Shown one piece after another: positions 23,902-50,045 of a stretch of 64,000 nt of DNA. The first letter of the stretch is position 1, and each line of letters starts with the position of its first letter. The position numbers and the translations under genes were made by a program. Below the pieces are notes generated by a model, which was not told the DNA's origin, did not search any database, and saw nothing but the letters and a program-made list of their open reading frames with translations. The stretch comes from Penicillus capitatus (taxonomy: Eukaryota; Plantae; Chlorophyta), in contig OZ287713.1 of NCBI GenBank assembly GCA_965649825.1, forward strand, positions 56,644 to 120,643, read 5' to 3'.

Positions 23902-24060
23902 AGCCCACCCTGCCAGGAACGCCGGTATTTGTCGATGCTTCCTTTCCGCGTCGCATCGAAGACCGACGACGCCGTCGACGGTAAGACGACGCGGTGAGCG
24001 ACGACGGATTTAACGCGATGCATTGTATTGGCAAACGCGCAAATGCAAAAGATAACGACA

Positions 24061-26925: not shown

Positions 26926-27652
26926 TTAGCTGTAGTACTTAAGCATGGATTTGGACTTGATGTCGAGCATGGCTTCCTGAACGGCACCCGGCTTCACGGC
27001 AGGTATCCCAACTCCCAAACACGAACAGATGCCTTTGACTTTGTCCAAGTAAGTCACTGTCACTGTCCCCTGCGATGTGACAGCGCGAAGGTGAGGATAG
27101 ACGAGGGTAAGGGGATGGCGGCCGTACATAGCTCTCCGAGACTGTATCCCGCGTTCGCATCTTGTCCGATGTTGTCGAGTGTCCTTCACTGACACCTGTA
27201 TCTCTCTCCGTGCCTTCGGGAAGGTAAGGGACATCTGTTGTGGATGGATGACGCGGATAGGGTCTTAGTTCTTCATATCTGATGCCCTCCAGCAGTCACA
27301 ATAGTTAAGCGCCAGACATCGGGCGGCATACCCATGGGCATAGGTGCATCGTTCATCGTAGGGACATCGTCCAAGCGTCGCGTATTTTTCACAGAGTTTT
27401 GTCTTGTAGAAATCTTTTGGGCCTTCTTTCATCTCTCGCCATCTCTGAGGCCCCTCCATTGGAGCCATACCGAGAGCGCCCTCGCCTCCTACCTTCATCT
27501 CTGTCGACCCCGGGACATCGTGAGCAAATTTGCATCGATCTCCGAAAGCACAGCGACCGTCTCGCCGCCAACTACACAACACCCAACACGTCACATCGAA
27601 TCCACTCGCAAGGCACACGCTTGTTGCAGATCCCTTGACGCGGAAAGTTCAT
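26926..27652 (-). CDS. Tandem CCCH zinc-finger protein (TIS11/TTP-like)
   Basis: C-x8-C-x5-C-x3-H fingers: CNNWRRDGRCAFGDRCKFAH (needs GC-AG intron 27572-27620) and YKTKLCEKYATLGRCPYDERCTYAH. Confidence 0.8.
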
Positions 27653-27760
27653 CGTCCCTCTCGATGTCGTACGATTCTTATCCCTCCCTCATCCGATGAT
27701 GCATCTGACGCTCCATTGTCGTCATCGATGTCGAACGGATCTGCCATTCGCATGCGTGAA

Positions 27761-30090
27761 ATGTCGAGCACCAAACCAGACTTGTTCAAAATCGCAAGGT
27801 CGTACATCGAACACCTTCTCGATGCCGTTCCTGGATACAAAGCGCTGTTGGTGGACAAGGAGACGCTTCGAATTGTCAGCACTGTATTGACACAGACAGA
27901 ACTCGGAGCTCGCGATGTCTTCTGCACCGAACGGCTTGACACACATGACGCTGCGGAGCACCATGAACTCAAAGTGTGACGCTGTGCACGCAAGGGGCTC
28001 AACGGGAGCTTCGTCGACCAGGCGATTTGTTTTCTCCGGCCAACGCGTGATAACATTACGCATATGAAGAGAGAGCTGAAGAAGCCGAGATTTCAACAGT
28101 ACTATATGTGTAATGTCACACATCTGTCACATCAGTCATACATTGCATTCCATTGCAGTCTTTTCCAACATCGTCAAGGAGACGTTGTTGACGGACTTGG
28201 CTGAAGCGGACGCCGAGAGTGAACTGGTGACGCGCGTTCAGGTCTGATCCCTGATACACGTATGGATGCGACAGCGCGCACGGTGGATGTTTGCCTTTCT
28301 CAGGAGCACTATGCAGACTATGTAGTACTGGACGGACATCATTTCTGCATCCCCATCAAACAGCCCAGTCTCTTCATGAGCCAGGGATTTGGATCTTTCG
28401 ATGGACGCGGCAACACAAACGAGTGATTTGATCAACTGCCTTGGCCACGTCCTCTATGCGCGAAAACGTGATGCAGGATGGAGAGTGTGGATCGAATGGT
28501 GCAAGGACTGTCGGCTTTGTTACTCTCCCTGCGTCGCCGTCCCGTCATCCGCCACCAGAGCGGATCCGATGTTGCCGTACGGTTAGCCATGTCCATCTAT
28601 CATCTCATATACAGTGAGGTGCGATGATGGAAGCCGGTCAGAATGTGTGCGAGTGTGGTTGGTGGTCACCAGGAGCGTCTGCATTTTGATTTTGGTCTTC
28701 GAGGAAACGAGAGCCCTCCTGTGTTGCTCATTCTCGATCGCAAAGACGATCCAGTGACGCCGCTTCTCACACAGTGGACATATCAAGCCATGGTGCACGA
28801 ACTGATCGGCATTCAGGACAACAAACTCAAACTCAACAAGCCAAATGTATGATCCTATATTGAGTCCTTTGCTCGACCAATGCCATCGTGTGATAGATTC
28901 CGAAAGATCATGCAGAGTGCGTGGTGTCGGCTTCTGTTGATCCCTTCTTTGAGAAGCATATGTATGCCAACTATGGCGATCTGGGCCTGGCGGTGAAGGA
29001 ACTGATGGACAGTTTCCAGGGCAGCGCCGTCAACTCACATCAGCTCAAGACCATTGAAGACATGAGGCGCTTTCTGCTGAACTATGGAGACTTCAGTCAG
29101 CAGCAGCGCAATGTCTCACGTCACGTCAACATCGTCAGCGTCCTCTCGGACGAAATCGGCAAACGATCCCTTATGGAAACCTCAGAAGTGCCTATGCATG
29201 CTTTCTGCGTTTGGAGCGTCAGCGTTGCTCCTTCTGTGCTAAGGTCGAACAGGATTTGGCATGCGCCACCGGTACATCTGCATCGATCGCCCAAGATGCC
29301 GTCATCAAGGTGCGTTGCCAGAAATCGCCGTCCGTGGATATCGTTACCGTACATGTGGACGACAGATCTTGCTGAACTCCGGAGCGACGTTGATGGATAA
29401 ACTCCGACTGGTCATGCTCTACGCCTTGCGTTTCGAAAACGATCGGGAGCGCATCCGACAGCTGACCTACCGTCTAGGACTGGAAGGCGTCGACGATCAG
29501 CTCATTCAATCCGTCAACATCCTGCTCAGATATGCAGGAAAGAGCAGGTTGGACGCTAAGTGCCAATGGTGGTATGACGGATGAATGGCTGCGATAGGCG
29601 ACGTGGAGATCTCTACGGAACACGGTCTGTCTTCTCCTATGCAAGGAAAATGGCAAAGACGTTCAAGGGCATCGAGAATGTGTACACCCAGCACGCACCG
29701 CTGTTGAGTGAGACATTGCGATTGCTGACGAGCAACGATCTCTCTTCCAGAGACTATCCCTACGCTTCACAATCCGGGGTACTTCGATCCATCCTCACAG
29801 AACAGCAGCCTCTTCACGATGTCCCGTAGACGGAATTGCCGCATTGGCAGGCGCAATACAAGCACAGCCCGCCGCAAGAAGTGATCGTCTTCATTGTGGG
29901 CGGCACCACGTACGAAGAGGCCAAGGCGATGCATGAGCTGAACGAACGGGCGGAGTCGAATGTGAAAGTGTGGTTGGGCGGCACCAACGTCCTCAATTCC
30001 TCGCACTTTATCGAGCTGCTGATACGCGGTTCCAAGGAACCGGGATCCCATATGGCGCCTTTGGAGATCATGAGAGAGGTTTCGTTGTGA
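27761..30090 (+). CDS. VPS45: Vacuolar protein sorting 45 (Sec1/Munc18 family)
   Basis: [60 protein letters not shown] and [10 protein letters not shown]; about 9 GT-AG introns. Confidence 0.95.
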
Positions 30091-30156
30091 AAAGCGCATA
30101 GACTCTGACGGTTAACATTGGGAAAATCTTCTCAAAACAAACACAAGCGTCCACTT

Positions 30157-31437
30157 TCACGATGCTCCAGCCACAATCTCCAAAATCTCCTTCGTAATCT
30201 GTGCTTGCCGAGCTTTGTTGTATTTCAAACTGAGGACGCGTTTGAGCTCCGCTGCGTTGTCTGATGCGGTATTCATGGCATTCATTCGCGCCGCCAGCTC
30301 AGACGCCAGGGCCTCTTGCAGCGCACGGAGCAGGACAGAATTCATGTACAGTGGCAGCAAAGCATCGATAATCTGAACAGGATCTTGCTCAAAGATCAAA
30401 CTCGCATCCAACATACCCACATCACGCAACACCGTTTCTCTCGTCACCTGTCAGGCAGACGTCGTGCGAAAGGGGCCTGTGTGTCGAAGGAGTCTTACGG
30501 AAAGCTCTCCTTCGACGGTGGTGAGTTTGAAAATCTCGTCCTCTGCCGCATCGACGCAGTTTCCACCGATGTCGCAGATTTCGCCCCGGGGAGTCAGGGG
30601 AAGCATCGTTTGGATGATGGGCGTAGATGCGATAAGGGAGACGAATTTTGTGTAGACCAATTCAACTTTGTCCACTTCCTCCGAGACAAATTCCGCAAAG
30701 ATCTCGTCGGCAATGCTCTGCGCTTCTTTGGTCGTAGGCGTCTGTCCCAGTTCAAAGATCTTTTGGATGTTGTACTGGGGGCGACGCTTAAAGTACTGCG
30801 ATCCTTTTCTTCCGACGCAAATCAGCTGGACATCAATCCCAATAGACGTGAGCTCCTGATGTCGCTCTTCCACCTAGAATCGATGATGTGACAGGCGCGA
30901 GATACCATGCAGGTGCCTGCCTTCTTGATGACAAAGTTATTGTATCCACCACAGAGACCACGGTCGCCTGTCAAACAGATGAGGGAGACTCTCTTGACGG
31001 GGCGAATGGAGGTGAGGGGCGAATCGACGTCTTCGTCACGCAGACGGAGGTTGACGCCGTAAAGGACCTGTGGAGATGTTGAGTGGAGACAGGACAGAGC
31101 ACAAGAGCGACGAACTTTGACGAGATTCTCGGAGAAGGGACGGCCGTTCACGACAGCCTCTTGTGCACGACGGACCTTGGCTGCTGCAACGAGTTTCATG
31201 GCGTCCGTGATCTTCTGTGTGTTCCTTACGGAACTGATACGATCGCGTGTTTCTTTCAGTCCTGCTCGGACGACCTGGAGAACGGCGACTGTATTGTGCG
31301 CCGTAGGTTTGGGGAGAGGGTACCAGTGTGTTTCCTCTCGCGTCGGCGGTGGTCGAACGGGAACGCGATAGGAGTTTGTTCCCGGCGAAGCTCGAGCATC
31401 CCTGAGACGACGCGGCAGATCGCATGGAAAACGCCAT
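30157..31437 (-). CDS. atpC: Chloroplast ATP synthase gamma subunit with transit peptide
   Basis: [31 protein letters not shown], redox loop [29 protein letters not shown] and [16 protein letters not shown]. Confidence 0.97.
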
Positions 31438-32642
31438 GGCTGGGAAAGGCGAGCAAGACACGGGGAAACGCCGACTGGTCTGTGTTAATGGATCTCGTCA
31501 CTTGGCGAATTTGTACGACAATAGATTTGAGATCATTACGGCGAAAGGAATCGCTGTCCGAACGGACGAGGCTGATGCATTCTTCTTCGTTCGAAGTTTC
31601 TGAGATCATCAGTTTCGTGATTTCTCAGGTTGTCTCTAGTATGTTCCTCTGAGCGGAATGGAGGGGGCACGTGTTGTCTGGGCAGCACGCAAGGATGACT
31701 AACAGAGCAGGTCGTACGGCTTGGGAGCGTACGGACAGAAGTCGATTCGTAATGGATGGTTCGGCTGGTTTCGCTGTCTTATATCGATAGAGAGGGCATT
31801 GGTGATGTATATTGTTGGCCGGGCCTGCTTCTGTGCTTTCCTATCGTCGAAGAAGCTGTTTTCGGCTGTGGTTAATTCGGAAGTAGGCGAAACGTAAAGA
31901 CATATGGCTACGATAGATAAAGCGATGGGTGTTTTTGTCATTGCATCGGAACAAGACGTCTAGCAGCCAGATGCAGGATTTCATTGCATTAACTGTCCTG
32001 CAGACTCGGAATCTGCATCTGGAAACGGATGTCGCAGACAGGCTGTCATCTCATTTTGACATGTTTGGCTTTTTTCAAGCCATTGATTGAATCCTAACCG
32101 CCTCCACCGTCGTCACTGGGGAGATTTTGATGCATGATCGAGCACCGGTCTTTCTTCCTGTGGCACGTATATCGGCGCGTTTCGAATGGATCCGATCCTC
32201 GGTCTGAAACGCGCCAGTTCATTTCAAGACTTCTTAAGTTTCCCTCAAAACCAACCTGCGTTAAGTGGGGAGAACAGACATTTCGTTTTTGTGTGAAAAA
32301 TTGCCACTCAAAAGACAGTTGATTTAACAAAGCAAAGACGGCAAGCAACACTTCATAGACGAGAAGCAGGGATGGTTGGTCTCCCAAAGCCGTTTTGATA
32401 TCTCTTAGTCGATAGAGAAGTCCTCGGTTTTTTATTTTGATGAAAATGTGACGTATGTGTATCAGGGAACTGTCATGGAAAGGATGATAGAGATTTAAGC
32501 GACATGAAATTCACGTGTATCATACAGATCTGAAAAGACAGCGTGAGAATAGCAGAATAGCAAACCACAAATGATTAGACCTGAAGAAACTTCACACAAC
32601 TGTGGTGTAGGGAAGTTGTCGGGTACAAGAAAAATCGGAACT

Positions 32643-35600
32643 TCAAACAGCATTGAGCCCGATATTTGCGAGAGACAAAGAGAATCGACCGCAGTCCCTC
32701 ATCCACTGGGGAACGTTACGCCATCCCGACTCCAGGACACGTTTGAACTTCTGGTATATCATCGTGCTATCATGTGTTACTATGTTGCAGAAGATGGTAT
32801 GCTCCAGTAGTGAGGTTTGTTCACGTGTATCTCTCGTGACGAACTTCATCGTTAATTTTACAGAAACGAACCTCACGGTCGCATCTCCAAACATTGGACA
32901 TGCGACGTTGAGCAAATCAGAAGGATCAAAGCTTCCTGGATCCAGCAGAGCAACCACCTTGTTTCCCTCATACAGACGGTCTTCTTCCTGGATCATTTCG
33001 AGTTGAGCTCTACTACCGTCTTTAAGAGTCGCTTCAACACTCAGAACTTCGCGAATAGGAGAGTTGCCGCCTCTTATGGGGTGGAGATAAATACTCACAC
33101 GGTGTTTCTGTCGGCACTTCAGAATAAAAATGGGATCTTGCGGAAGAAAATCGTCTGCCATCGTTGGTACTTCCCGGGCCTCGCAGCAATGAAAGGGAAT
33201 GCCTTGGATATCATTATCAGAGATGAGCTCTACGACATCGATGGCAACTGCTAGATTGGCCAGATCCATGTGTTGCAGTGTCAGAGTGACACATCTCAGT
33301 ATCTCATCAAATTTTTGCTCATCCTAGAGCCATCGACCCATCTGTCTTTAAGAACAGAAATCAGATGATCGCTTACATTCTTGCGTCCTGCAGCCATCTG
33401 AGATGTATCCAGACCAGAGTCGAAGATCCCCTTCGTCCTCGCTTTGGCTGCTGTCTGTCTTTCCATCGGTTTGATTCGAAGCAGATTTTTGACGAGACTT
33501 TTTTCCTGTTTTTCTTCGAGGCATTCAATCGTCGAGTTGATATGCTCAGCAGACTGGCGATCTCTTACATCCTCCAGCGACGAACAATCGCCATAGAAAC
33601 GCGTCCCTAGAGGCAAATAATGCAAGACCATGTGTAAAATGACAAGTGGAGAGAGTATGCACCTTTCAGCATCTCGAAGGCGATGATTCCGAACGACCAC
33701 ATGTCTGCAAAGGCGTCCACTGCGATCTCCTTTTTGCCATTGAAAGCAGCTTCAATGATTTCCGGTGCTGCGTAAGCTGGAGTCGCATGGATCTGTTCGC
33801 CTTCCCATGTAGTCGCCGCCGAATCAAAGTCTATTAATTTCCATTTGTACACGTCATTGAAAAAAATGACGTTGCTCGGTTTAAGATCGCGATGCACCAC
33901 ATTGTGGCTGTGTATGTCGACGAGAGCAGCCAGAATCTAGAACGGACAAGATTTTCAAAGAAAATGCCCAACGAAGAACGCAGAAGTGCACCTGGTCCAA
34001 AACAGATCGCCTGTCCATTTTGCTTGGTCGTGCTTTCTTCATCCAATATTCGAGAGTGTCATGTCCTCGTTCAAAGACCAAACAAGGCGGATATTCACAG
34101 TATTCAATGTTGTTCAATAATCTGAAGAGGGCGTTTTCTACGTGCATGGGAATGTATTGTGATGTGCTTGCTTGCAAACATGATCGCTGTGTCTTAGTTT
34201 GCGATGCATCTTCAAGGAATTATCATATAGAAGTCGATTGGTATAGAACTTCAGAACGACGGGGTCTCCTGTATTGATATTTTCAGCGAAGAATACATGC
34301 GCCTTCCTATTCACACTCTTCGATTTTATTAAGTAACTGCAGACCAAGGAATAAGAGAACATACGAGAACAAATCGAGCGAACCTTTGGGCAAAGTATGT
34401 CTCCTTGGTAAGAGTGTTCAACGCGTCCAGTGAACCGGATTGTGTGACTTCGGTCCTAAGAGTGAGCCATTAAGCGAGGAGGGCAACGATTTAGGACAAA
34501 TCACATACGCGCTTAAACAGCGTCGTAGGCCACGGACGTTCGGTGCAGAACAAGGCGATTCTATGACAGCACAGTTTTCGTTATTCTTTTGTTTTGCATG
34601 GATCGTGTACCGTATGGAGGTGGCGGGTTCGAATACGGGGAGGGTTCGTTTGGGGGGTATTCATGGTTGTAAGGACTGAATGGCTCTAATACCAGGCTCG
34701 CACTGGAGGTTCTGGATCTACCCAAACGCGGGGAGGCTTCAGTCGAAGAGTGCTCTAAGCTGCGAGGACTTGATGACTCATCTTCAGTATCTGAATCCCC
34801 CTCCAAGGACACCGATCCTTTACTGTCTAAACATCCATTCTGGTCTCGATCTGTTTCCCCTCCAAGTGGAGGTTCCGCAGCTGTGTGTTTTGGCTGTTCC
34901 CTGTCGCAGTTTGCTTTGATGCTGTATGCGATGACGAGGCGCCGGAACAGATTGGCGTTGAACATTTTCATGCGGATGCGATAGGTTCTCACATGCCTTC
35001 GACGCACCAGAACCACTTCTTTGTCTGAGGAACTGCACCAACGAATGTGCTGCATCTTCATGGATAGCTGACATTGAGTGAAGTCTTGATCAAAAAAATC
35101 GATACTGCGAGGGGTGACGACTGCAGAAGAAGTTTTTTCTTCTGACAGCTTTCTGTGATTGCATTCGACAAGTTGAACACTGAAGGAAGTGCTTTCGCCG
35201 TAGCGCTGTGTGTGGATCATCTCAAGAAACCACCTTCGAGGATCTTCTGGTATCATAAGGCTCTTCTTGGCAAAATAGTCCCGTGCTTCCTTTGCCCAGT
35301 CTATGTATTTTTCCCCAGCAAAACATTGCGATAGAAGTGACGAAGAGCGCTGAACAGTTACTGCTTTGGGAACGCATCCTCGAATCTTGTTAAATAACCC
35401 TGTCTCGCTAGAAAAGGCATCTGATCCATACTCGAAGAGAATTTGCGCTATGCAAAGCTTAAGAACATCATCCACAATGACAGGGAAATGCGTGTTGAGG
35501 TACTCTTGTCTTAACTGGCGATATGACAAGCGGACATAGTCCGCATTCAGCATCTCCGCTTTTGCTTCCCTGAAGAGAATCTGTTTGAAATGCACTCTGA

Positions 35601-36569
35601 CCTGATGGCCATCTTCTTGGATGCCACCAGCGCTCAGCACTGCTGCCAGGTGAGCGTCACTGTCCAGATAAATATCTTCATCCAAAAAGAGCGTGAAGTT
35701 TTTCCAGTTTTGGATACCGACCGACCAGGCTGCCTGTTCGACGCCATCTGCGACAAGTGTCTTTCGATCATAGGCTACTTCGACGGATCTGTCATCCGCA
35801 GACAGCACATGACAGACGGTGATCTCATCTGACTTGATCCGTCTGTTCGATGATTGTTTTTTCATGACATCAATTAATGCATGATGTTTCCTTATCGCGT
35901 CGAGGATTGCGCAGGCCAGCATCCGCACCATGGGATCTTCCTTTGCATCAGATGAAATGCGCTCTATGTATGGCATTAAGCAATGCGCCAAATCCTGCAA
36001 TCAAAAATTTCAGTTTGATGGCAGCGATGGATGCTGTTTACCGTTGAACATGCCAAGCGCTCGGCAAGGATTCTGAACAGCTTCCAGACGCTCCATTTCT
36101 GATAATGCGTGACATTACCTCTCGTCTGTTTCAGAAGCTGCAGGTAGAGCTCATCTCTGAGGTCTTCGATCCCTTGGGTTCGGCGTGCAATAGAGTTGAC
36201 GATTTCTCCGTGGCGGGCCCTGTTTGAAAAACCTCTTGGCAGATTCGTCCATTCAAGGATGTCGTCAAACATTTCGACAGCAGCTCCTGTCTCAGCTGGA
36301 CCCATGTGAATAAGGGTAGTTGACATGAGAGACTGTTGAAGCAAACCCTTTATCCGTCAGTTCTCGTTTGGAACGAGTTTTTGCTCACCGAGGAAGGTCG
36401 CAGTCTGGCAGATAATGAACGGGCGAGTTTATCGGACGACCCTTCAGATGTAGCAGGAAAACTAGTTATCTGCAAATATCGCCCGTACAAAATTAGAGCT
36501 TTCGAAAAGCGAGCTTACGCCGAGGTCGCACAGTAACCCATCAACGTCGTCGGCGATTCCCGCAGACAT
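32643..36569 (-). CDS. MyTH4-FERM + protein kinase + unknown C-terminal domain fusion protein
   Basis: MyTH4 (LRDELYLQLLKQTRGN..W), FERM (FKQILFRE...LSYRQL..EYL...FPV..DD..KLC..QIL) and kinase (VVLKFY, HRDLKPSN, LIDFD, TPAYAAPE, ADMWSFG) are linked in frame by 47-53 nt introns. Confidence 0.82.
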
Positions 36570-38004
36570 GGTTTCGCGTGTCGTCCACTGGACAGAAAAA
36601 ATCGTCGCCAATAACGTACAAGATAACCGACACTTCACCTGCTGTCGTGGGGGAAATGGCCAACCTGATATTTGAGCAAGGAAACACGGAGCAGGCAGGA
36701 CGTGAATAGCAAAAGTGTAAACGAAGGCACACAATTTTCTTGTGGTACGTTACAATTTCACCCTTTATCTCAGCACGTACGACACTTATGTATGTGCATC
36801 ACGGTTGTGTAACCGCTCTGTTTATGTCAGCGCCGCACACTCCACTGTTATCATCTCTGTTCACGTTTTCGAAATCACGCTATCCAGCGGTGGGTATCCT
36901 TTCCTGAAGCAACTTCAGGATGTTGCTACTGTTTAGTATTTTGAAGTTACCTGGAATAGCTAGTTAGTCTCTATGAACGAAAGGAGAAGAAAGAAACTGG
37001 ATAATGACAACGGATGAAGCAACCAGAGTTTACCTGTCCGCAGAGGTAGGTTACAAACGAAACGATTACAGTTCCGCCTTCACCAGCAACCGATGCCCAT
37101 TCCAGTTCAAACGGCGGTTGCCGCTGCCATCCGTATATCTTTGACAAGAGTTCTTTGCACCAAGACAGTCCAAGAAACACGCAAAGGTATAATGAAAAGA
37201 ACTGATGACTTCTGGTGACTTACTGGGTGTATGCCTTAGCTGAAAACAATGCACGTATGAAGAGTTGGGTCGATGGACGCACTGAAATCACCGAATCCGG
37301 CAATCGGTTTGGATGACTCGATTTTGCAGCTTGGGACAGATTTGGAATAAGAAGTCTCCTTATGTCAGCTCTATCTCATGCACTGTCTCCATCTATCCAT
37401 CAGCAGACCCAGATGCACATTAAAACGCATCTCTCATTGCGTTACGGAAAGAGAACCTGGAAGTGCGAACGGCATAGGTATTCGATGCTTTTTAGGAAGG
37501 GCAGTTCCCAGGTAAACAGCATTCGATGGTGACACATCCGCAAACCTCACGCAACGGTATCCTTGATTCCTTTCTACAAGTGCTCAAATGCGCCATCTCT
37601 GTCAAGCTGACAAGCTAAGTGAGCACTCTCCATGCTGTATGTCTAAAGAATGACAGATTCTCCTTCCTCTACGTGGAAAACTGCAGCATTCCAATACTCC
37701 ATGTATCGGCGCACATACAACAGTTGTATCAACATCCAGTGTACGTATTAATGCATTCCTCGAAGCTTCCAGAAGAGTATTGCAATGCCCACATGGAGAA
37801 ACTTGTTTAGCTGAGTTCCTTTTTGCTGCCGTACACTTTAGACGTGACATGATCCAGCCATCACATCATGACGTGACTGCTAGAACCTCGTACTCGAATC
37901 AACCGAGATGTGACATCTGTGTCGGACACGGACAGAATTGCAAGACCATCAACGCATTTCGCTCAGTCGTTTTGTTCAAACCTCAGACGTTGCATCGTAT
38001 AGAC

Positions 38005-38904
38005 ATGACGGAATCCAATTCTCTCGTACCGAAGAGACAGGACATCATCTATCTCGATGTCGGCGGAAGTCCGTTCAAGATACTGAAGTCGACGATATCG
38101 CGCTACCCCGACTCGCTACTTGGACGAATGCTAAAGGAGTTCCACAACCTCGGAGAACAAGACGATCCTCTATTCATCGACAGATCCCCGACCGCGTTTC
38201 CCTGGATACTCGAAATCTATCGGTAACGGCTACAATCAAACAAGACAGGCTGACAGTGGGTATTGCGCAGAGATGGTGACCACGCACGTTGCGTTCCCGA
38301 TATGTCGCCTGGGTTTCTCCGCCGGGAATTGGACTTTTATCAACTTCCAGTACAGGCCGCTTTAGACGCTGAGTCGCTGACGGAAGAAACGCATTCTACA
38401 ACGGAGCCAAATTTTGATACGTCAGACATCTTGTCCATCGCCGAAGTCAATCACGAGATTGCACGTTGGGGTTTGGTGGATCTGTGGCCAATCGATGTCT
38501 TCGTCTATCATCACTTCGAAAGAGGAAGCAACGAGAAGCTTCTGCGAAAGCTCTTTCTTCGTCCATCACTCAGCACTTACGGTTCTCTCCCCTGCAACGC
38601 AAGAGAACACGTCAAATTCAGCGATGTCCTCTACGGAAGACGTCCCCTATACAGCAGGGAACGATTTGGGAACTATATTCAAGCCTTCGAAGTCGATCAG
38701 GCGTCGGATAGCCAACAAGACGGCGACGGCGAAGACGATGAAGATGATTTCACTGCGCTGGTGAAGGTGAATCTTACACAAGAAGCCGCCAGCCTTAACA
38801 GAGAAGCAGCCCGGTCTGGATGGGCCATTGAAGTGAGACGCGACGAAGCTCCTAGCTTTCGAAAGAACTTGCAGTTCCATCATCTCGTCATCTATCCTCT
38901 TTAG
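38005..38904 (+). CDS. BTB/POZ (KCTD-type) domain protein
   Basis: IYLDVGG..F...STISRYPDSLLGRM..FIDRSP..F..ILEIYR|DG...LRRELDFYQLP; intron 38223-38270. Confidence 0.88.
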
Positions 38905-39229
38905 AGACCGGAAACAACCAGTTGCGACGTAAAACAGTGATTGGCGTAGAATAGAGTGTAAATGGTAAACAGTGCGCTGTTCCATAACAAGCTGACGCGA
39001 CACAAGACGTGACAGCGGAGCAGATGTGGACAGTCCTTTCCATTCGCCTTCACTCAACGAGCTCTCGACGCTTCGACGCACGTTAGCTGCAAACGATCTT
39101 GGAATCGAAGAATGCAAACGGTGGAGCATTCATACAAAAACGGATCGTTTGAACATGGCCCGGCGATGTAACCGCGAACAGGGCCTGTCAAATAGATAGC
39201 TTGTAACCATGCTACCTCGACGCGTTGGA

Positions 39230-40431
39230 TTACTCCCACTGTTGTCTGTCAACGCATGGGGCGGTCAGTTCTGCGTATGTTTTCTCGGAAGCGGCAAGGA
39301 GCTTTTTGACGCCGTCGAAGGTCGATAGCCGGATTCCTATAGGTGTTTGATCGCTGCGTTCACGGAGGGCGGCTCTCACCTTTGTTGGGCAGATTCTTGA
39401 TCGCGTTTGGGACAAAGCCGCGGTAGAGGCCTCCAAACCCGTCCTCCTTCACGATGGAGCTCGTGATTCGGCGATACGACGCCCCCTCCGACCCCAACTG
39501 CGCCACACGCCTGTGACATTGCCTGCATCGCGGACGGACTCCGAAACACGAAGGCGCACCGAATGGTGTCGAGTGGGTAGCAGAAGGACGTTGCGATCAG
39601 CGCCGCCATGAAGCCTCGGAGGAAGGAGGGAATCGACCTCGGCAGGAGATCGTAAGACGCCAGTTCCAGCGCCATGTACGGTGCGATCCCGAGCACAGCT
39701 GGCTTGACTCCTCGATAAAACGCCGGCACTCCTCCTTCCCTGAACAGCGTCCCGAAGGCCATTCTCACCGTCGTCACCTCCGGATCCACCGCCAATCGAA
39801 ACCGGACCGTGTCCAACGGGTACGTCGCCTGTGAGCACAGATCTTGCGCTCGGTCACGCGGACGGAGATTCGGCGGCTTACGAAGGTCGAGCACATTCCT
39901 GCCGCCGCGCCGGCGATGAGGCGCCGCACGACGGGGAGGTTTCCGTCCTCATCCCGCAGCAATCGCTTGAAGATCTCGTACGAGCCAAGCTGCACGGCGC
40001 TGTAGGGAACCACGCGGAGAAGCTGCACACTCCATCACTGGACACTCGCGCTTCGGCTTCGTGCATGGAGTGCTTACCTGCGGCAGATTGCCTTTCCAGA
40101 ATCCGAGGATGCCTTCCTCCTGACAGATTGCCCAGAGGGCCCGCAGGAGTCCTCCCCTCAGGGCAGCCTCGCGGACAGCGCCTTTCTGCAGACCGCCTCT
40201 CACTTGCAGCAGAATCTTGACGCGGTCCAGTGGGGCGACGATCGTCTTCCCGAAAGCTCCGGCGAACGCTCCGGCAGCGAACAGGACAATGGGCGTCGGC
40301 ACCAGCGACAGGATTGAAATCGGCCGTTGCAGGAGGACGGACAGAGGCGGCCGTGCAGTTGTCGTTGCGGCGAGGGTGCGTATCACGCGTCGTTGCGATC
40401 GAAGCGCCTCTCTGCTGCGCCCTCTGCCCAT
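39230..40431 (-). CDS. Mitochondrial carrier family protein, thylakoid/envelope ADP,ATP carrier (TAAC)-like
   Basis: Three carrier repeats (APLDRVK, YPLDTVR, YPLDTIR), GFWKGNLPQ.LRVVPYSAVQL and LGIAPY; N-terminal extension. Confidence 0.88.
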
Positions 40432-40503
40432 GAAATCGGAACCCTAGCGGCGACGAGCATCAACGTCGGTTTATCAGTCGTACAGGCGACCATTGATAGA
40501 AAA

Positions 40504-41374
40504 ATGGCACAGAACGACGAGTCCTCTGCACAACCTTCGGCAGCGACACTCGACACGCAGACACGCCTGCAGCTCGCCTACGCCGCTTTCGGCAGGCTCA
40601 AAGACTATGGAACAAGCGTCCTGAAAGAAGTGACACCCTCCCAGTGGTCGAGTGTCGTACAGGAAATGCGCCTGCACTAGAGGAAACCTTGGTCGGAGCT
40701 CCTGGACCGCTCTTCTTTTGCGAGACCTCCTTCGACGACAGAGGCACGGCTCGTCCAGCGAGGGAGAGGGCGTGGATGCATGTGCTTCTAGGCGGTGTCC
40801 CGCTTTCGGCAGAACCTGCACTACTTTCGAATCAACTACCTGATCATTCTGCTCTCCACCATCGTCCTCTGCATGATCATGAGTCCGCAGTCGCTCCTCG
40901 TGCTGCTGGCGCTGTTCGGTTCATGGATTTATATGTTCATCGTCCGAACGGCTCCCCTGACAATCGCCGGAAGAACTCTCGGGTGCGTCCCATCATCGCA
41001 TTGCATTCTCCGTCTCACTCGGCCGCAGGGAGCGCGACAAGCTGATCGGCATGACAGCGCTCTCCGTCATCGTCGTATTCTTCCTGACCAAGTAAGCGGC
41101 GCCACGGATGCGACACATCTGTCTCATGTTTGCGAAGCGTGGGGACGGTCTTGCTATCCTCAGTGATACTGGGCTGCGGCGTCATCGCTCTGCACGGAGC
41201 CACACGCGTTCCGGACGACCTCTTTATCGACGACAGTCAAGTGAGCGGCTACCCTTCATCGCGCAGAGCACCGCCGGTCACTCTTTCGCTGTGGTGATGC
41301 AGACGGCCCCAAGCATCTGGTCCATCCTCAAGGGAGAGCAGACTGGCCAAGCACAGATCTCCACCGTCGTCTGA
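40504..41374 (+). CDS. PRA1: PRA1 (prenylated Rab acceptor) family protein
   Basis: RKPWSELLDRSSFARP....AVSRFRQNLHYFRINY and ALHGATRVPDDLFID; multi-exon, including GC-AG intron 40744-40791. Confidence 0.9.
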
Positions 41375-41813
41375 TGCTTTCGTGATGTGTGAGTGACAAT
41401 AACGCTCGCGCCACTTCGCGTACTGTGCGTTCGTGCGCTGCAATGTAACGAATGCATCTCCAATCTGGCTGACTTAACATCTGCCTTTATCAACAACTTA
41501 GGATGTCTACATAGATGTCGCCGTTTGACGCACGACAGCTTTCTGCGGAATGCAGTGGTTGGATGCATATCATTGAAACCGACCAACGATGCCACTCCTT
41601 CTACATGAAACGAAATCACCGGATCCAATCGTTAAAGGCAAGACGGTGCTGTCGAAGACATGAGCATGGTAAAGATAACTGTGACGGCTAAACGTTTCAA
41701 CTGGAGAGTAGAAAACGAACAAAGAAAGAATGAGTTCAATGGGGACGCAAACGTGCGAATCCTGTTGGAGTGTTTTGCAGCAGTGAGGGACTGCAGATCG
41801 CGTGGCAGTGCAT

Positions 41814-42224
41814 TCAGCGGAGGGTCTTCTTCCACTCGGCCGGCTGAATCATTCCCGGGCCGTACTCTTCGAGGAGCTCCTTTTCCGCCTGTTTGTGGGC
41901 CCACGTCTCGAGGCGACTGTCCGGCGCGGCCATCATTCCAATAACGAGAGCCAGTCCACCACCACCGTAGGTCAGGTAGCTGTTGCATGTCCACAGACGG
42001 CGTCGGAAGGGGGCGGAGAGAGGGAGGGAGGAAGCTTACTACATCATCTCCCAGCCCTCCCATCGGCGTTTCATCCCTGGCGGTGGGGGCGTTTCGCCAA
42101 AGAGGAATCCGTTACGCCCCGTCTGTTGGCCGGGTGCCCAGAAGCTGCCGCCGGGCCATGTCGCGGCGCCTCGGCTGCGGAATGTCCTCAAGGCGCTGAG
42201 AGGGAGGCGTCGGAGAAACGACAT
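41814..42224 (-). CDS. NDUFB11: NADH:ubiquinone oxidoreductase ESSS subunit (NDUFB11-like)
   Basis: GRNGFLFGETPPPPGMKRRWEGWE, then after one intron a single TM segment and ETWAHKQA. Confidence 0.85.
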
Positions 42225-42518
42225 AACGTATCGGACAGTTCGCAGCGAAAAACGAATCGCACGATCAATCCGCTATCGCTCAGTCAGATCATCATTCTGC
42301 TCGCTGCGCGTGCGTACGTGCATAATGCACAGACAAACGTTCGTCAAGAACGGCGTCCCTTGCTCGCATCAACGATGTCAATTAATCGACAACGACGTGT
42401 CTGTGTCACACCGGTCTTGAATACATTTCCATGTTCGAATCATGTAATCCCTCCCCCCTTTGCAGCCGGTGCGTGTGTTCAAGGAATCCAAATGGCAGCA
42501 CGGGTGCTGACTTGTCCC

Positions 42519-42995
42519 TCAGGCCGGGAGGTAGTTCCTCTCTCCCGTCAGTGGCACCTGGACCACGTAGCATATGAGGGGCACACCATTGAGGTCTGAT
42601 GCGCGTATGACAGCATTGTAGACGCCGCGTACGAAGAAGAGCGGAACGACCCGGGAGTACTTAATAGTCACTTCTTCGCCTTTGCGGAAGTTGCATTCGT
42701 CCTTGAGGCCCAGAATCTCGCAGAAATCGCCGTTCTCGGTGTAGAACGGCACGAACCTGCGAAATGCGCGGCGCTTCACAACGACGCTGTACGTCCCTCC
42801 TGATACGTCTCGGGTCGAGACTCCTGTGACCGTGAAACGCATTTCGTTTCCTCGTGTTATCTTGTCGTCTTCCAGGTACACTGTCCCCGATGCCACCGCG
42901 GGGGAACCACAGTCTTCCATCTTCAACTCCGTACGCGCGAGTGCACCCGTCGCCAACGCGCAGAGAACGAGAAATGAATAGAAGGCACGCAGCAT
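42519..42995 (-). CDS. ML-domain (MD-2/NPC2-like lipid-recognition) secreted protein
   Basis: Signal peptide, EDCGS, DFCEIL..CNF.KGE, VPLFFVRGVY and LICY; intronless. Confidence 0.85.
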   Translation of the reverse strand: MLRAFYSFLVLCALATGALARTELKMEDCGSPAVASGTVYLEDDKITRGNEMRFTVTGVSTRDVSGGTYSVVVKRRAFRRFVPFYTENGDFCEILGLKDECNFRKGEEVTIKYSRVVPLFFVRGVYNAVIRASDLNGVPLICYVVQVPLTGERNYLPA

Positions 42996-43085
42996 TGCAG
43001 AAGTGTTCTTCCTGAGTCAAAAATAACAGAAGCTCAAATGACAGCCAGGTACCAACAGCACTAGTGGTAGCAAATAAACCACGTA

Positions 43086-43568
43086 TTAAACGACGAATTT
43101 TAGGGATGATGTGCTTTTAATCAAATCCAAAGGAAAACGGACGCAGGTAATGAGATTCTTTTCAGAGTCCCAGACTTCAAACGTCGCCTCGTAACGTCCT
43201 TTCGGTGCAAATGGGGGAACGATATGTGAGAAGACAAACGTCATGACCCGTCCTGATGTCAATGAACAGTCGTCTTCCGTGATGAGTTGACAGATGTTTG
43301 CTTCTGGGAGTTTGAGCGTAATCGGTCGACCGAAGACATTCCTTGTTGCGCTCAGGCGATAGGTGGCTTCGCCGATGTCTTTGGAGACAACGGCGGTCGA
43401 GGTGGCCGTCACCCTTCGGCCTCTCTTCAGGACATCGGGTTCCTGCGAAATGCTGACGATTTTGAGGACAGTCGAACCACAGTCGGTTATTTTCATTTCG
43501 ACGCTCGCATGGACGCACTTCGCCATGCAGAGGCACGCGACGACGCAGAGAAAGAAAACACGCGACAT
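43086..43568 (-). CDS. ML-domain secreted protein, tandem paralogue
   Basis: Signal peptide, TDCGS, NICQL...CSL, VPPFAPKGRY and LITCV; intronless. Confidence 0.85.
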   Translation of the reverse strand: MSRVFFLCVVACLCMAKCVHASVEMKITDCGSTVLKIVSISQEPDVLKRGRRVTATSTAVVSKDIGEATYRLSATRNVFGRPITLKLPEANICQLITEDDCSLTSGRVMTFVFSHIVPPFAPKGRYEATFEVWDSEKNLITCVRFPLDLIKSTSSLKFVV

Positions 43569-43669
43569 CTTCGAACCGGTGCACGGCGAATGGTTTCGTC
43601 AATAAATACGATGACTGTCCCATCATGACTCTTTATTTGTAAGCATGATAGTCGATTTGGCGGTGCGAG

Positions 43670-46600
43670 ATGGCGAAGAGCAAAGAAACACGGATTGCCC
43701 CGCCAAGTGAAACCTGTCCACCTGAGACTGTCCACCGCGAAATAGGATGTCCTTCCAGGGTGGCAGCATCCGTTCGTCAATGTCTTCCGGCATTTCTGCG
43801 TTGACCGAAGCGAGACTGCCCTGACGAGTGATGTGAAGAGTGTCATGGTAGCAGGACGGGCAGACTGTGGGGCCGGTGCAGAGACTGCTGTTTGCTTCTC
43901 AGGACAAGACGATCGGCAAACGCGTCTGGCAGCTTCAGGGCGCCGTAAGCGTCGCGACGTACATTCGACTGCCGACGTCGCCGTCCGAATCCCTCGGCCT
44001 CGAAGGTCGCTTCTGCTACATCCAAGTGCGGTCGCCTGTCTCTTCGCCTCGTCACGCACCACCCTCTGCAGGTGTTCGTCTACAGCGGACTGGAGTTTCT
44101 GCTGCATCTGGATGTGCAGGACGTCCACGGTAATGTCCACGGCGTCGCGCTGAGCAATGCGTTCCGACGAAGATCGAAAAAGGTGCGACGCGATGCGTTC
44201 GATACAGATGATTGCAACACTGACCATGGCAGCGCAACATGCGTGGCCTTCAAGTGCCGCTGATTCTGGAAGATAGTGCGCATGAGGCTTGGATAACGCT
44301 GGCTGTCGACCTCAGGTCGATCCTGGGATCGTGCACCCAGGTGCCCTTCAAGTGCCTGCGCGGATTTCAGATCTGTGCCAATCTCATAGTCAGAGGACTT
44401 TACACGTCGGATATCCAGATGCGACCCGAGGTGAGAAGACAGTCACTTTCTTCGATGCGTGAAGAGTCTGCGCTCACTACAGTCGCTACCGAAGGATATG
44501 GTGTTCTCGATGGCACACGACCCGTCCCTCTTCAGAATGATATGGGTTCCGAAGGAGCCGGCGGCGGAAACTCAGGAAAGGGACGTTCCGTACCAGCTCG
44601 GTCGCGGATCGAGTTCAGTCCCGCGACAAGCGGATTCCGGACGCATGCGCCACGCCCTCCCATCGAGGACGGAAACGAAACGGCAGCACTCTCGGCCTGT
44701 CGTAAGCCCGAACGTCTTAGAGAAGGCGTCGCCCGTAGCGGTATCGCACATTGCGAGGCCGGACCTCTGTTTTGTCAATGGCTTCACCGGCGAGTACACG
44801 AACATGCTTTTACGGGTGCCGAACTCGGACGAAGTCCTCTTCGCCGCAGGCTCCCTTCTCGTTGCCATGAACAGTATCAAACGAGCATTCGACGTGCTCA
44901 GTCCCAGCGAGTTGCCTGTTGCAGGAGCGAAGCAACAGCGTTTTTTCATTGGGCACTCTGCGCGGATCTGTTGCTTGTCGATGGACAGCGAGGGGAGGCT
45001 GCTAGCCTCAGGACAGGAGGGGACACATCCGCTGATTCGTTTGTGGGACGTACCGACTGGCAACTGCCGCGCCTTAGTCAGCGGGCACCATTCCGGGCTC
45101 GTATGCCTGGATCTGTCCCTCGACGCTCAGAGATTAATCGCCGTGGGGCTCGACGAACAGAAACGGCAGGAAGTGAGAGTATGGAACGTTCGCCGCGGTC
45201 GTGGATCTTCTCTGGCCGTGACCGTGGTGTTGCACTGCGTCAGTTTGGCAAACATCAAGTGCATTCAATGGAGTCCGTTTGATGCCGACCGTCTACTGAG
45301 CTGCGGCCGTGACAACATCCGCATGCACCGGATCAGGGACGGAAAGCTCAGATCCATGCCCATTCACTTCTCCGACCCTCCTGAGAACCAGAGTCCGTCG
45401 TCGCAACGAACGTACACGTGCATCGCGTTCAACGCTAGCGTTCCTGTGCGGCGATGGATCTTCGTCGGATCCGCTTGCGGGGCTGTGTTCCAGATAGACT
45501 ACGACAGGTGAGTGGCGAAGCTTGAGTCCGGAGGGACCACTGTCTGCTGACAGGTGCTGCCCAGTCGCGAGCTACAAGCTGCAGAAAGACGCCATCAACT
45601 GCATGGCGATGAGTGACGGCTTCTGCGTCGTCGGCTCCGATGATGGTTTCCTGCGCGTCTGGCCACTGGATTTCGTCGACTACCTTCTTGAGGTCGCCCG
45701 CACTCGACGATGCTCGACGACTCAACAAACTAACGTTCGTCTGTAGGCCGAGAACGAGGCGCCGGTGACGTCCGTGGGTCTCTCGACAGACGGTCTCCAG
45801 ATCTGCGCCGGAACCGAGAGTGGCACGCTGACACTGCTGGACATTGTCTCCCACACACACGAAACGCTTCTGCGCTCGCACAAGGACTGCATCAACAGCC
45901 TGTCTCTACTGCCCGACAGCTCGGAGGAATCGCGCTCTCTTCGTTTCCTAACGGGAAGCGCAGACGGGACCATGCGGCTGTGGGAGCTAGCACGGCCGAC
46001 GGCGCACTGGCACAAAACGGCACCCGACAACGACGTCATGGCAGTCTATCTGGACAACGGATCACCGGACAGCTTCGAATCTCACCCGTGCGAGCACTTC
46101 GTGTGCGAGCAGTCCTATGAGTTCCGCTGTCCGGATGACTTCATCCTCTCCACGGCGGCGACCTCAGACGGACGGCACATCGCCGCGGGATTCGAGAGCT
46201 CCTGGGTTCGCATCTTCAACCTCGAGCAATCGACTATCGTTCAGGCAATGTCTCCTATACGCGCCAGAGCGAGAAGCACTCTTTCTGGACTGTAGGAGTT
46301 CCGGCAGCACAGTGGCGGTATCGTCAACGTCGCGTTTACAGAAGACGTCTCTAAGCTGTTTGTGCTGGACAGAGGCGGCGTCCTTGTTGCCTACGATGCG
46401 ATTAACGGCTACCGACCGGCCAAACAGTTGTTCCTGTCCGGCGACGGGTCGCCTTCGGTCTTTGCAATGAATAAAACCACTCGCAGCTGCGTGGCGACCA
46501 CAGTCACCCAACACGGAGCCGTATCTCTGCTCGTCCTCTGCACAGACACGCTTCGACTGCAGAGAGAGATTCGGACGGACGCAAGGAGCTGCTCTCAGAT

Positions 46601-48187
46601 GAAGGTATCGAAGAGCGGTGAAGAGATATGGCTGATCGATGCACTGGCGTCAAGCCTGATGGTCATCGCAGTGTCCACTGGGGAGGTCATCGCGCAATGG
46701 AAGCATCGACACCTCTGCTGCTCGCCGTGCTTCTGCCTTGACGAAGAGCGCCGATTCTTTGTAACAGGAGACAGCGAAGGAATTCTGCGATTCTGGCCGA
46801 TGCTGCTTGCAGACGAGGCGAAGGAGATCTGCAAGCTGTGCAGTCACCCGTCAGAAATCACAGGTCCTACACCGTCTTTTATTCTGATCGTCGATAAATC
46901 GATGGCGGGCACGCAGATGTCAGGATCTGTGGCGATTTTCTGATCTCCGTCGGAAGAGGCGACAGTCTGTTTGTCTGGCAATTCCGCGACGCTCTTTCAC
47001 CAGAGGCGAAGACTCCACAGTGGGATGAAGTCGGACACGACGAGACAACACCCGCCGTCGCCACCGAGCAAGCGATAACGATCGAAAGGCGACCAGGTGA
47101 ACGACGGGCTTTACATGTCGAAGTGCACGTCTCGGGGGTTTCTCAGCAACTGCAGCCGAACTTCGCATGGCGCCCATCGGCTGGAGTCTTCGCTTGTGTT
47201 GCGGAGGAAGGGTTGGTTCTCGAAACAGCAGACCGCTCGGAGCGTCATTGTCTGCAGCATCATGCTACAGCCATCGGCGCCTTGTGTCTTTCTGAAGACG
47301 GGTTACTCCTCGCTTCCGCCTCGACCGACGCCGAGATCAGCGGCTATGTCGATATCTGCATCTGGCACACAGAGACGCAACGCCTGACGGCTCTCCTACA
47401 GCACCACAAGACACAGATTCAGGTGACCTCACCTAGTCGCGTATTTACCGCGAATCTGTCCGCTTCTGCAGTCTCTGGCCTTCTCCTTCGACAGCGTCTG
47501 GCTCGTGTCCCTCACTTGCGGAGCGCCAGCCTTCGTCGTTGTATGGGATGTTGCCTCTCAATCGCCGGTGGCTGTTGCTCAGAGCGATCTACCCTGCAAG
47601 GAGCTCTATTTTCTGAAACGCCCTTCGGAACCAAAAATCGTCACCGTAGCAGCCGCGAAGATACTTCTCTGGGAGCTTCGAGTAGACGGACTGCACCAAA
47701 CCGACCTTTTTGACGCGAAACAGATTGCAAGAGGAATCCGTTGCAGCTGCCTTGCCGATCTTGACCGACTCTACTGCGTCACCGAGTCGGGACAACTGAT
47801 GTCTCTTCAGGTAAGAAACGCAAGGGCCGACAAATCGAAGGTGTTCTGATCTGGTCCAGGATGGAGTGCTGAGTGAAGTCGAATGGGACACGGGTGGCGA
47901 AAAGATAACCGCTGTTGCGTCATCTAGTCACGGACTCGTTTGTGGGACCGCAACGGGTCGTCTGCTGTGCTTCCGGTGATCCCGTCGCCTCACGCTCTCT
48001 TTGCTTCTTCTGTATATTCAGGATGAAAGAGGGGAAGGCGGAGGTCGAATCGACCGATTGCGTTTCGGTAAGGTCGGCGGTGCTGTCGATTCAGATCGAT
48101 CCGACTTTTGGCACGGGAAAGATGAGCACTGCAGATGCCACCATTTGGCACGTCGCTTTCGACGACCCGTCAGTCCTGTGTCCATAA
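43670..48187 (+). CDS. WDR90: WDR90/POC16-like: CFA20-like N-terminal domain plus WD40 repeats (ends approximate)
   Basis: WQHPFVNVF, YIRLP...LGLEGRFCYIQV, QRFFIGHSARICCL, LLASGQEG...IRLWD, LLSCGRDNIR, VVGSDDGFLRVWPLDF..LLEAENE and HETLLRSH; more than 12 short introns. Confidence 0.85.
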
Positions 48188-49380
48188 ACCCGTGTTGTCC
48201 GTCCAGAAAGAGTCAACGGCGCAACCATTCTAACATGATGATGCACTGCATCTCCAGTTGTTCTTTGACACTCGTTAACGGAATCTTGTCTTTTCCGATA
48301 CGCGAACTGTTCTTTCATCGTCATCTCGCACATTTCGGTCATTGACACTGGTCCAATCGACATCTCAATGGTCTCCTGGAATAGAGATCTATTCATCCCT
48401 GGGTGACTATCGAATTGGTAATAAAATGTAGAAGAAGAATGCGGCTTACCCTATTCGGTCAAATCCTTTACGTTTTCCTAATCTTTGTTCACAGAGCCGC
48501 ATGAAGCATATTGTTGTAAGCGTCAAAAAACGAAAGCCCATTCTCATTGTTTCGTGAGTGTCGCATTTCTCTTTTCCACGACGCCAAGTCCCACGACAAC
48601 CGTTTCGACAAAGCTAGATATCGATTTTGTTTTTCCGCAAACATTTTGTTGTCTTTTTTCAATCTCGTCGCTAGAGGACCGGACAGACAAGGATGCGAAT
48701 ATCGCTGGATGTTAACGCCCGAGTTAACTCGAACAAGCTAACACGCTTGTATCGACAAGGGCTCTTTGGGTCGGTTTATAGTAAAGTCAGCGAAAGAAAG
48801 ATGTTTAGAGGTCTACGCATTGTACGTCCGTAGAGTGGGCGCCTCGCGTTTTCTGTCTATCGTGTTAATGAAGACAACGTTTCCAGTATCGAGGTCTTGT
48901 TCGAGCAGTTGACCAAAGAACTCGATTCTCGCGGAAAGAGTCTGACAAAGGGTCTCTAAGCAAAACTCTCTGGCTCACGGCGTCGGGTGACGACCCCCTT
49001 AGTGCGTCGTCAAGTTCGACGTCGACGGGGAGGCACGGACCCTGGAGCTTCTCGACGATGCCCAGCGTCTGACGAAGGGCGATTCGGATGTGGAAACGGA
49101 ACGTCGAGCTCCGGGCGTGCGAAGAGAACTTCATCAAGATTCTCACGAACGGCGAACGGCGCAAACGGTAGTGATCGTCGGCGCGAACAAGACGATGCGT
49201 TACACGTACGTGTCTGTATGTCTCCAGGCGTTCATGCTTGGGAAGCTAAAAATACGTTGAGATATGTCGACGACATTGAGGCTGACGCCAATACTCGCGG
49301 CGGCACGACCAAAAGCGAAACTCTAGTGTCTTCTCGCGAAATCGCCAGCAGGCAATCGGCGTAGAGCTCTTCCTTCCTCA

Positions 49381-50045
49381 TTACGAGCGCTGTTTGTGTT
49401 TTCTTCGTATTTCCTCTTGATGCTCTGTGTGCGCCGTCTTCGTCAGAAACTCTTGCTTCTCCAAGTACTGTTCAGTGCTCTTATGGTGTGCGCTAAGCTC
49501 CTCCTCGTCCGTTGCGTGCGTGGCTTTGAATGCGCGCCAGTCTTGTTTACTGGAGTCCAATACCGTCGGCTACAGAGCAGAGGCAGATCTCAACCGTGTG
49601 ACAGCGGAAGGGGGAGAGATCATTGCCTTCTTTTTCTTCTGAAGCGTCTCTAGCAAAGCATCGACGCCACCAAGCGATCGCTTCTGCGCTTTCTTCTCAT
49701 CCTGTCGCAGCCAGAAGAGTGAGACACACAGTTGGACACCACCTTCCTTGAACTACGCGCCTGCTCGGTAGCAGCCTCTTCGGTGAGCGAGACCGGCTTC
49801 GGCGCGGCAACCGTCTCCACGTGCACGATGCCCGGAATCTCGGCGTCCAACGTCGAAGCGGTGTTTTTCGTCCCACCGGCATCAGTCGACGTCGCCCTTC
49901 GCTTCGGACGTCGCGGTGTGTCGTAGCTCACATTCCAGTTGACGTTCTGCGGCGGAGGCTTTCTCTGCTTCAGTCGTTGTTCAGATCGACGCTTCAGGCT
50001 CTGCCACAGGGCGTCGATCTTTGCAGACTTTTCAGCATCGGCCAT
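49381..50045 (-). CDS. CFDP1: BCNT/CFDP1 (SWR1 complex Swc5-like) protein
   Basis: Spliced C-terminus GGVDALLETLQKKKK|PTVLDSSKQDWRAFK...EEELSAHHKSTEQYLEKQEFL is a BCNT-C domain. Confidence 0.82.

Follow-up and report, generated by a model that had tools for sequence, protein, structure and literature searches.

Frequent GC-AG introns among the very short introns of a 64-kb window of green algal nuclear DNA

Genes and introns of the window

The DNA considered here is a stretch of 64,000 nucleotides (nt) of contig OZ287713.1 (positions 56,644 to 120,643; referred to below as the window), in which introns that appear to begin with GC instead of GT were found at an unusually high frequency. Six such introns had been proposed in an initial annotation of the window and a probable seventh was identified in the present analysis. 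Genes were modelled with a simple purpose-written gene finder that was self-trained on the window, and those recovered encode SF3b1, a DnaJ protein, a repeat-rich protein with a SAP domain, Rad4, a Sec1/VPS45 homologue, the chloroplast ATP synthase gamma subunit (atpC), a large kinase, a mitochondrial carrier, a PRA1-family protein, an ML-domain protein, WDR90/POC16, BCNT/CFDP1, a dynein intermediate chain and a homomeric acetyl-CoA carboxylase (ACCase). Approximately 60 GT-AG introns were modelled, all of them 44-61 nt long, and the true total of introns in the window is probably about 100. The genes contain one intron per approximately 300-600 nt, and the mean G+C content of the introns (54.5% for the GT type and 53.7% for the GC type) matches that of the exons and of the window, which is 53% G+C.

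The atpC product carries the CDIxGxC redox motif of the green lineage. The best named match of SF3b1 was that of Caulerpa lentillifera (84%), followed by trebouxiophytes, chlorophyceans and land plants at 76-80%, and mamiellophytes were absent from the best 120 SF3b1 matches. The window is nuclear DNA of a chlorophyte green alga, as judged from its sequence, and the organism probably belongs to the Bryopsidales, among the siphonous ulvophytes, with Caulerpa as its closest named relative by SF3b1. It may belong to an Ostreobium lineage, given the 52.4% G+C of O. quekettii. The window sequence is also present in other metagenome assemblies at ENA.

Four related contigs (L001, L002, L004 and L005) were recovered for comparison, as well as an independent assembly, L003, with identical sequence at atpC. 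L004 comes from a close relative (83-86% nucleotide identity, 60% G+C) and spans 39.1-48.6 kb and 54.2-60.9 kb of the window. L001 is distant (approximately 70% exon identity, 43% G+C) and spans 9.6-18.5 kb and, in inverted orientation, 22.1-31.3 kb. L005 is also distant (47% G+C) and carries WDR90, and L002 covers atpC only. Over orthologous genes the G+C content of the related genomes ranged from 43% to 60%. When JGI metagenomes were scanned with the dynein intermediate chain for relatives covering CFDP1 and the kinase, only matches of 32-33% were obtained.

Intron lengths divisible by three were under-represented among the GT-AG introns (11 of 59, P = 0.01 against an expectation of one third), and an in-frame stop was present in 7 of these 11. 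The depletion of such introns fits selection for nonsense-mediated decay of transcripts with retained introns, as in other short-intron eukaryotes.

The GC-AG introns and their GT alternatives

All six introns of the initial annotation run from GC to AG on the gene strand, are 47-57 nt long and have flanks that join in an open frame, and the junctions that it had quoted were reproduced on splicing at the six sites. Those in the PRA1, WDR90 and CFDP1 genes have lengths divisible by three and end in an in-frame TAG, as it had also noted. Its claim that the nearest GT alternatives were out of phase or gave introns of 39 nt or less did not hold. When every in-phase, stop-free G[TC]..AG pair was listed exhaustively, GT alternatives of ordinary length were found in the genes for WDR90 (57 nt), the CCCH protein (58 nt), CFDP1 (45 nt) and PRA1 (60 nt), and each of these could be dismissed on Pfam scores or on the introns of orthologues. 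Short GT alternatives of 20-39 nt were also present. With the PRA1, BCNT, Pkinase, ATP-synt and zf-CCCH profiles of Pfam, the GC isoform received the best score, and the assignment in WDR90 was backed by orthologues. For five of the seven introns the position is common to relatives, with a GT donor in L001 (atpC, CCCH and the SAP-domain gene) or a GC donor for PRA1 (L004) and WDR90 (L004 and L005). The kinase and CFDP1 sites are covered by no relative; these two junctions rest on the continuity of the Pfam profile and, for CFDP1, also on an alignment with the human protein. Taken at the level of sequence, splicing at the GC donor is the best-supported choice at all six sites, and no other choice agrees with the protein-family profiles and the intron positions of relatives.

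The intron at 27572-27620 (minus strand; CAA|GCGTGT..GTGTAG, 49 nt, phase 2) interrupts the first CCCH finger of a tandem-CCCH protein. As the initial annotation had proposed, the finger spacing is restored by the GC splice, giving C-x8-C-x5-C-x3-H. The zf-CCCH score was 40.1 bits for the GC splice against 38.1 bits for a 34-nt GT alternative, which would yield C-x7-C, and 27.5 bits for the 58-nt GT alternative. In L001 a GT-AG intron of 42 nt occupies the identical position (AACAA|GTTTCA..GGATAG|TTGGCG compared with AACAA|GCGTGT..GTGTAG|TTGGCG in the window), and because this intron sits exactly between AACAA and TTGGCG it settles the GC assignment.

The atpC gene (approximately 30157-31440, four introns) contains a GC-AG intron at 30874-30920 (minus strand; AAG|GCAGGC..TTCTAG, 47 nt, phase 0). 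Its junction IKK|VEER aligns without a gap to homologues, and the ATP-synt score was 264.1 bits for the GC isoform compared with 259.8 and 252.6 bits for the GT alternatives. The donor at this site is AAA|GTACGA in L001 and likewise GT in L002, where the protein reads IKKV, and L003 is 100% identical to the window at atpC, including the GC donor.

The intron at 34122-34171 (minus strand; CAA|GCAAGC..CTTCAG, 50 nt, phase 2) lies in the region encoding the N-lobe of the protein kinase. The Pkinase profile is unbroken over the junction and scored 90.6 bits, compared with 88.4, 83.8 and 84.8 bits for the other choices, of which the runner-up is another GC-AG pair. Of the six sites this is the only one without a usable GT alternative: its sole GT-AG pair is 20 nt long and the GT-TG and GT-CG options score lower.

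In the PRA1-family gene (40504 to approximately 41300, five introns) the GC-AG intron is located at 40744-40791 (plus strand; GAG|GCACGG..TTCTAG, 48 nt, phase 0). The PRA1 score was 138.9 bits for the GC isoform, 130.8 bits for a 39-nt GT alternative and 120.4 bits for the 60-nt GT alternative. The close relative L004 has kept a GC donor (GAG|GCAGGG) in an intron of 46 nt, and the 2-nt indel between the two sequences shows the segment to be non-coding. With the GT alternative the exon would gain 9 nt, which differ by two non-synonymous changes in L004.

The intron of the WDR90/POC16-like gene (approximately 43.8-48 kb) at 46245-46295 (plus strand; CAG|GCAATG..CTGTAG, 51 nt, phase 0) is likewise GC-AG in L004 (CAG|GCAAGC, 53 nt). 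The two codons that would be removed by the GT alternative located 6 nt upstream show only a synonymous difference in L004 (GTT to GTG). In the distant relative L005 the same junction (TIIT|EF compared with TIVQ|EF) is formed by a 44-nt intron with the donor ACA|GCTAAG and no GT nearby.

The BCNT/CFDP1 gene (49381-50045) has its GC-AG intron at 49570-49626 (minus strand; AAG|GCAATG..CTGTAG, 57 nt, phase 0). The BCNT score of the GC splice, which alone aligns 71 residues to 71 profile positions, was 58.7 bits, compared with 49.0, 39.5 and 45.4 bits for the GT alternatives, and human CFDP1 (PDB 9nfv_P) could be aligned without gaps over the junction.

The seventh intron was a candidate of the gene finder, at 14307-14356 (minus strand; AAG|GCAAGA, 50 nt, phase 0) in the repeat-rich SAP-domain gene (13182-16350). 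Reading through this segment is closed, and the sole GT-AG alternatives are 71-104 nt long, which is beyond the 44-61 nt range. L001 has a 48-nt GT-AG intron of phase 0 at the corresponding K|E junction; since the flanks are of low complexity, orthology is weaker here than elsewhere. This is a probable further GC-AG intron in addition to the six of the initial annotation.

A number of other GC candidates were discarded. The segment 45434-45493 is coding (in frame, stop-free and 92% conserved), the candidate at 22194-22224 is in fact a 52-nt GT intron, and an apparent 31-nt GC intron in the ACCase gene is in fact a 49-nt GT intron at 56927-56975, as judged by inspection of the sequence and by what we take to be the length of a motif in plant ACCase. 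The gene-finder GC calls at 49702-49760, 50406-50455 and 12335-12389 were ambiguous and were left out of the seven.

Donor signal and turnover among relatives

Outside the GT itself, the 60 GT donors carry a total of approximately 1.9 bits, of which -2A contributes 0.60, -1G 0.37 and +5G 0.24 bits. The GC donors matched the consensus CAG|GTAAGT better at the other seven positions (mean 4.4 of 7 compared with 3.0 of 7 for GT donors; Mann-Whitney test, p = 0.003), and an A at +3 was present in 5 of 6 GC donors compared with 19 of 60 GT donors (p = 0.02). Compensation of this kind is familiar in ordinary GC-AG introns, and it suggests that pairing with U1 small nuclear RNA (snRNA) would still matter and that a mismatch at +2 would be tolerated rather than ignored. 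The initial annotation had suggested a relaxed recognition of the 5' splice site. This holds only in part. In its favour, the degeneracy of the GT donors, together with the tight length range of 44-61 nt, suggests that recognition depends little on U1 pairing; against a relaxation specific to position +2, the GC donors are compensated, and some 90% or more of the donors are still GT.

U12-type introns are marked by a /ATCCTT donor box and a TCCTTAAC branch site. No U12 box was present in any of the seven GC donors (GCGTGT, GCAGGC, GCAAGC, GCACGG, GCAATG twice and GCAAGA). The donor of one GT-AG intron, at 15909-15962 (minus strand), is CAG|GTATCCGC and similar to the U12-type /GTATCCTT box, and no TCCTTAAC-like branch site is present near the 3' end of this intron; the similarity is probably due to chance. 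In the window and the related loci, Rfam scans detected no U1 or other snRNAs, and no genes for U1 snRNA, U1C or LUC7 were found.

Donor type was compared between the window and its relatives. Between the window and L004 it was unchanged in all of the approximately 23 aligned GT introns and in both GC introns. The more distant contigs carry GC-AG introns of their own: the Sec1 gene of L001 has one with the donor GAA|GCCAGA, for which no GT alternative exists, at a site that is GT in the window, and two of the seven introns in WDR90 of L005 are GC-AG, one of them (AAG|GCAAGT) where the window has CAG|GTGAGT. The tally of GC-AG introns is 7 in the window, at least 1 of approximately 17 in L001 and 2 of 7 in L005, with 2 of those in the window shared by L004. 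GC and GT interchange at orthologous sites and some GC donors persist over deep divergence. Because GC-AG introns are also found independently in the relatives, the elevated frequency appears to be a feature of the clade.

The comparison also revealed changes in gene order and content. The block at 22-31 kb, which contains a conserved gene at 21.9-23.5 kb followed by CCCH, Sec1 and atpC, is inverted in L001 relative to the block of SF3b1, DnaJ and Rad4, and the remaining gene order is conserved (window 9565-18477 and 22070-31280 compared with L001 5-8704 and 9979-17829). Positions 48574-54226 of the window (about 5.6 kb, with CFDP1 and the dynein intermediate chain) are replaced in L004 by about 1.2 kb (12825-14062), and the flanking genes, WDR90 and ACCase, align at 83-86%. 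WDR90 of L005 contains an extra 49-nt GT-AG intron (L005 4555-4603) at about residue 343 of the model, where the window has an unbroken exon of 1025 nt; judged from these two sequences, this intron was gained or lost within the clade. L004 has two adjacent ML-domain (E1_DerP2_DerF2) genes at 6751-7807 and one was modelled in the window (42519-42995, minus strand, in the region 41.3-43.8 kb); a second copy may be located near 41.6-42.1 kb.

The G+C content varies strongly along the 64 kb, from 46% (32-38 kb) to 61-64% near the two ends (1-2000 and 56000-62000). A 24-nt tandem repeat at 13198-13312 (minus strand, 4.8 copies) gives the SAP-domain protein its C-terminal (T/D)AVAEPD(E/A) repeats, and tandem arrays with units of 16/34 nt and 30 nt are present at 451-530 and 568-699, in the GC-rich first kilobase that is without a clear gene model.

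Frequency and origin of the GC-AG introns

The seven GC-AG introns amount to 10% when set against the approximately 60 modelled GT-AG introns, or 7% of the approximately 100 introns in the window, roughly one intron in twelve, so that the initial annotation was correct in placing their share several times above the usual level of about 1%. For 7 of 100 the 95% confidence interval is 2.9-13.9%, and the binomial probability of such an excess ranges from 7e-5 to 5e-3. Surveys have found 98-99% GT-AG and about 1% or less GC-AG introns in animals, fungi and plants (PMC7072748), compared with which the local frequency is approximately 7-10 times higher. In a decoy test with the gene finder, 5-12 introns were accepted for any decoy donor dinucleotide, and GC gave the largest gain in score (+44 compared with +33 or less). 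Since this test cannot establish the number of GC introns ab initio, the case rests on homology and on the comparison with relatives. Counting for each dinucleotide the introns that bridge open reading frames was powerless, as even GT showed no enrichment.

The introns resemble the canonical GC-AG introns (U2-type) known from animals, fungi and plants in that they start with GC, end with AG and share positions with GT-AG introns of relatives, and also in that the remainder of the donor consensus is better matched than in GT introns. In plants, GC-AG introns are often conserved as GC between species (PMC7072748). Unlike usual GC-AG introns they are ultra-short (47-57 nt) and occur amid GT donors that are almost free of consensus.

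The intron type is well known and what is unusual is its frequency; neither the element nor the mechanism is of a new kind. On the sequence evidence we consider it likely that these are ordinary U2-type GC-AG introns, present at a raised equilibrium frequency under weak constraint on the donor, and the mechanism is probably conventional. U1 snRNA would still pair with the donor, and recognition would probably depend mostly on the intron as a short unit of constant length (intron definition) and little on the strength of the donor. Under such conditions a T-to-C change at +2 would be cheap when positions -2, -1, +3, +4 and +5 pair well, and such changes would be fixed by drift more often than in the majority of eukaryotes, leading to the local share of 7-10% GC-AG. 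Within the divergence times of these species, GC donors would then be lost by reversion or newly formed.

Several points weigh against this interpretation. The gene models span only about two thirds of the window, which makes the intron denominator approximate, and one 64-kb window gives a local GC-AG share and not a genome-wide rate. The Pfam margins are small for CCCH (2 bits) and the kinase (2-7 bits). The test of consensus match is perhaps biased by ascertainment, given that consensus-like GC sites are easier to spot, and the role of intron definition is one that we infer. A transcriptome or annotated genome of the organism was searched for and none was found, and a sequence that looked like a spliced transcript (P0251, ERR4592246) retains an in-frame intron and is apparently unspliced genomic DNA of another species.

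An alternative is that the spliceosome of the lineage is itself altered, at the 5' end of U1 snRNA (canonically ACUUACCU), in U1C/LUC7 or in the contacts of U6/Prp8 with +2, in such a way that C is nearly as good as U at this position; recognition of the 5' splice site would then be truly relaxed or retuned, as the initial annotation had suggested. The presence of GC-AG introns in every related genome sampled (the window, L001, L004 and L005), the swapping of GT and GC at orthologous sites and the extreme degeneracy of the donors would all be expected in that case. Against it, GT at about 90% or more in DNA of 53% G+C indicates that +2 is under strong selection, the GC donors show classical compensation at their other positions, and no other class of non-canonical donor stood out in the decoy test, the power of which was low. 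We therefore regard an altered spliceosome as unlikely.

A local fluctuation in sampling, with seven real GC-AG introns in a genome where the fraction is an ordinary 1-2%, appears more doubtful still. Only 64 kb were sampled and the window had been flagged since something in it appeared unusual, and at a true rate of 3% the probability of finding at least seven among 100 introns is still 0.03. This probability is 0.004 at a rate of 0.02 and falls to 7e-5 at 0.01, however, and the seven introns are located in seven separate genes over 35 kb, with GC-AG introns found elsewhere in independent lineages (Sec1 of L001 and the second site in WDR90 of L005). That some of the six are mis-assigned, the cell splicing instead at nearby GT donors (through cryptic short introns or alternative ends of exons) or at non-AG acceptors, is highly improbable despite the in-phase GT-AG alternatives in five genes and the narrow Pfam gaps (those for CCCH and the kinase, and 4 bits for atpC), given that some alternatives are only 20-39 nt long and outside the 44-61 nt range, others would delete or insert conserved residues, and alternatives are impossible in relatives with the same junction (WDR90 in L005, CCCH and atpC in L001).

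The G+C profile and the introns of about 50 nt also raised the possibility of an origin from the low-GC 'big outlier chromosome' region (BOC1) of Mamiellophyceae. Introns of BOC1 are 40-65 nt long with weak splice signals, and the non-canonical sites reported for it are TG and CG acceptors, not GC donors (PMC3491373, PMC3879977). The window resembles BOC1 in that its introns are short and numerous with weak signals, its G+C content is heterogeneous and its synteny with relatives is shuffled. Such an origin was rejected: the introns are not AT-rich (54.5% G+C, the criterion for BOC1 being below 43%), ten short introns are located within the ACCase gene at 57-64% G+C (62% for the gene), and SF3b1 places the host with Caulerpa and the core chlorophytes rather than with Mamiellophyceae. 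A literature search for GC-AG introns in Bryopsidales or Mamiellophyceae returned nothing relevant.

Frequent GC and GA donors occur in dinoflagellates, and GA-AG introns in the copepod Eurytemora and in Oikopleura. The likeness to the window is that non-GT donors are well above 1-2% and are a trait of the lineage. Unlike these organisms the window shows GC only, at a lower frequency and in Viridiplantae, with no GA or GG class in the low-power test.

These findings are mainly of value as a caution for gene annotation in this clade and as a starting point for counting GC-AG introns genome-wide. A GC-AG intron is present in 7 of approximately 20 genes of the window, and gene finders that forbid GC donors or penalise them heavily would mis-annotate about one gene in 3-5 in this organism and its relatives. 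It is possible, though somewhat less likely than not, that a marine Bryopsidales-like clade, represented by metagenome contigs of 43-60% G+C, has donors nearly without consensus, a genome-wide GC-AG share of 5-10% or more and a frequent turnover between GT and GC at orthologous sites. If so, no higher GC-AG usage would be on record for Viridiplantae, as far as our literature search showed, and the clade would be a natural system for studying how short-intron definition replaces U1 pairing; the U1 5' end or U1C might be modified in such a system. Should the rate hold genome-wide, it would constitute a plant-lineage case of the decay of donor recognition under uniformly tiny introns, and the turnover between GT and GC among relatives could be used as a measure of selection at +2.

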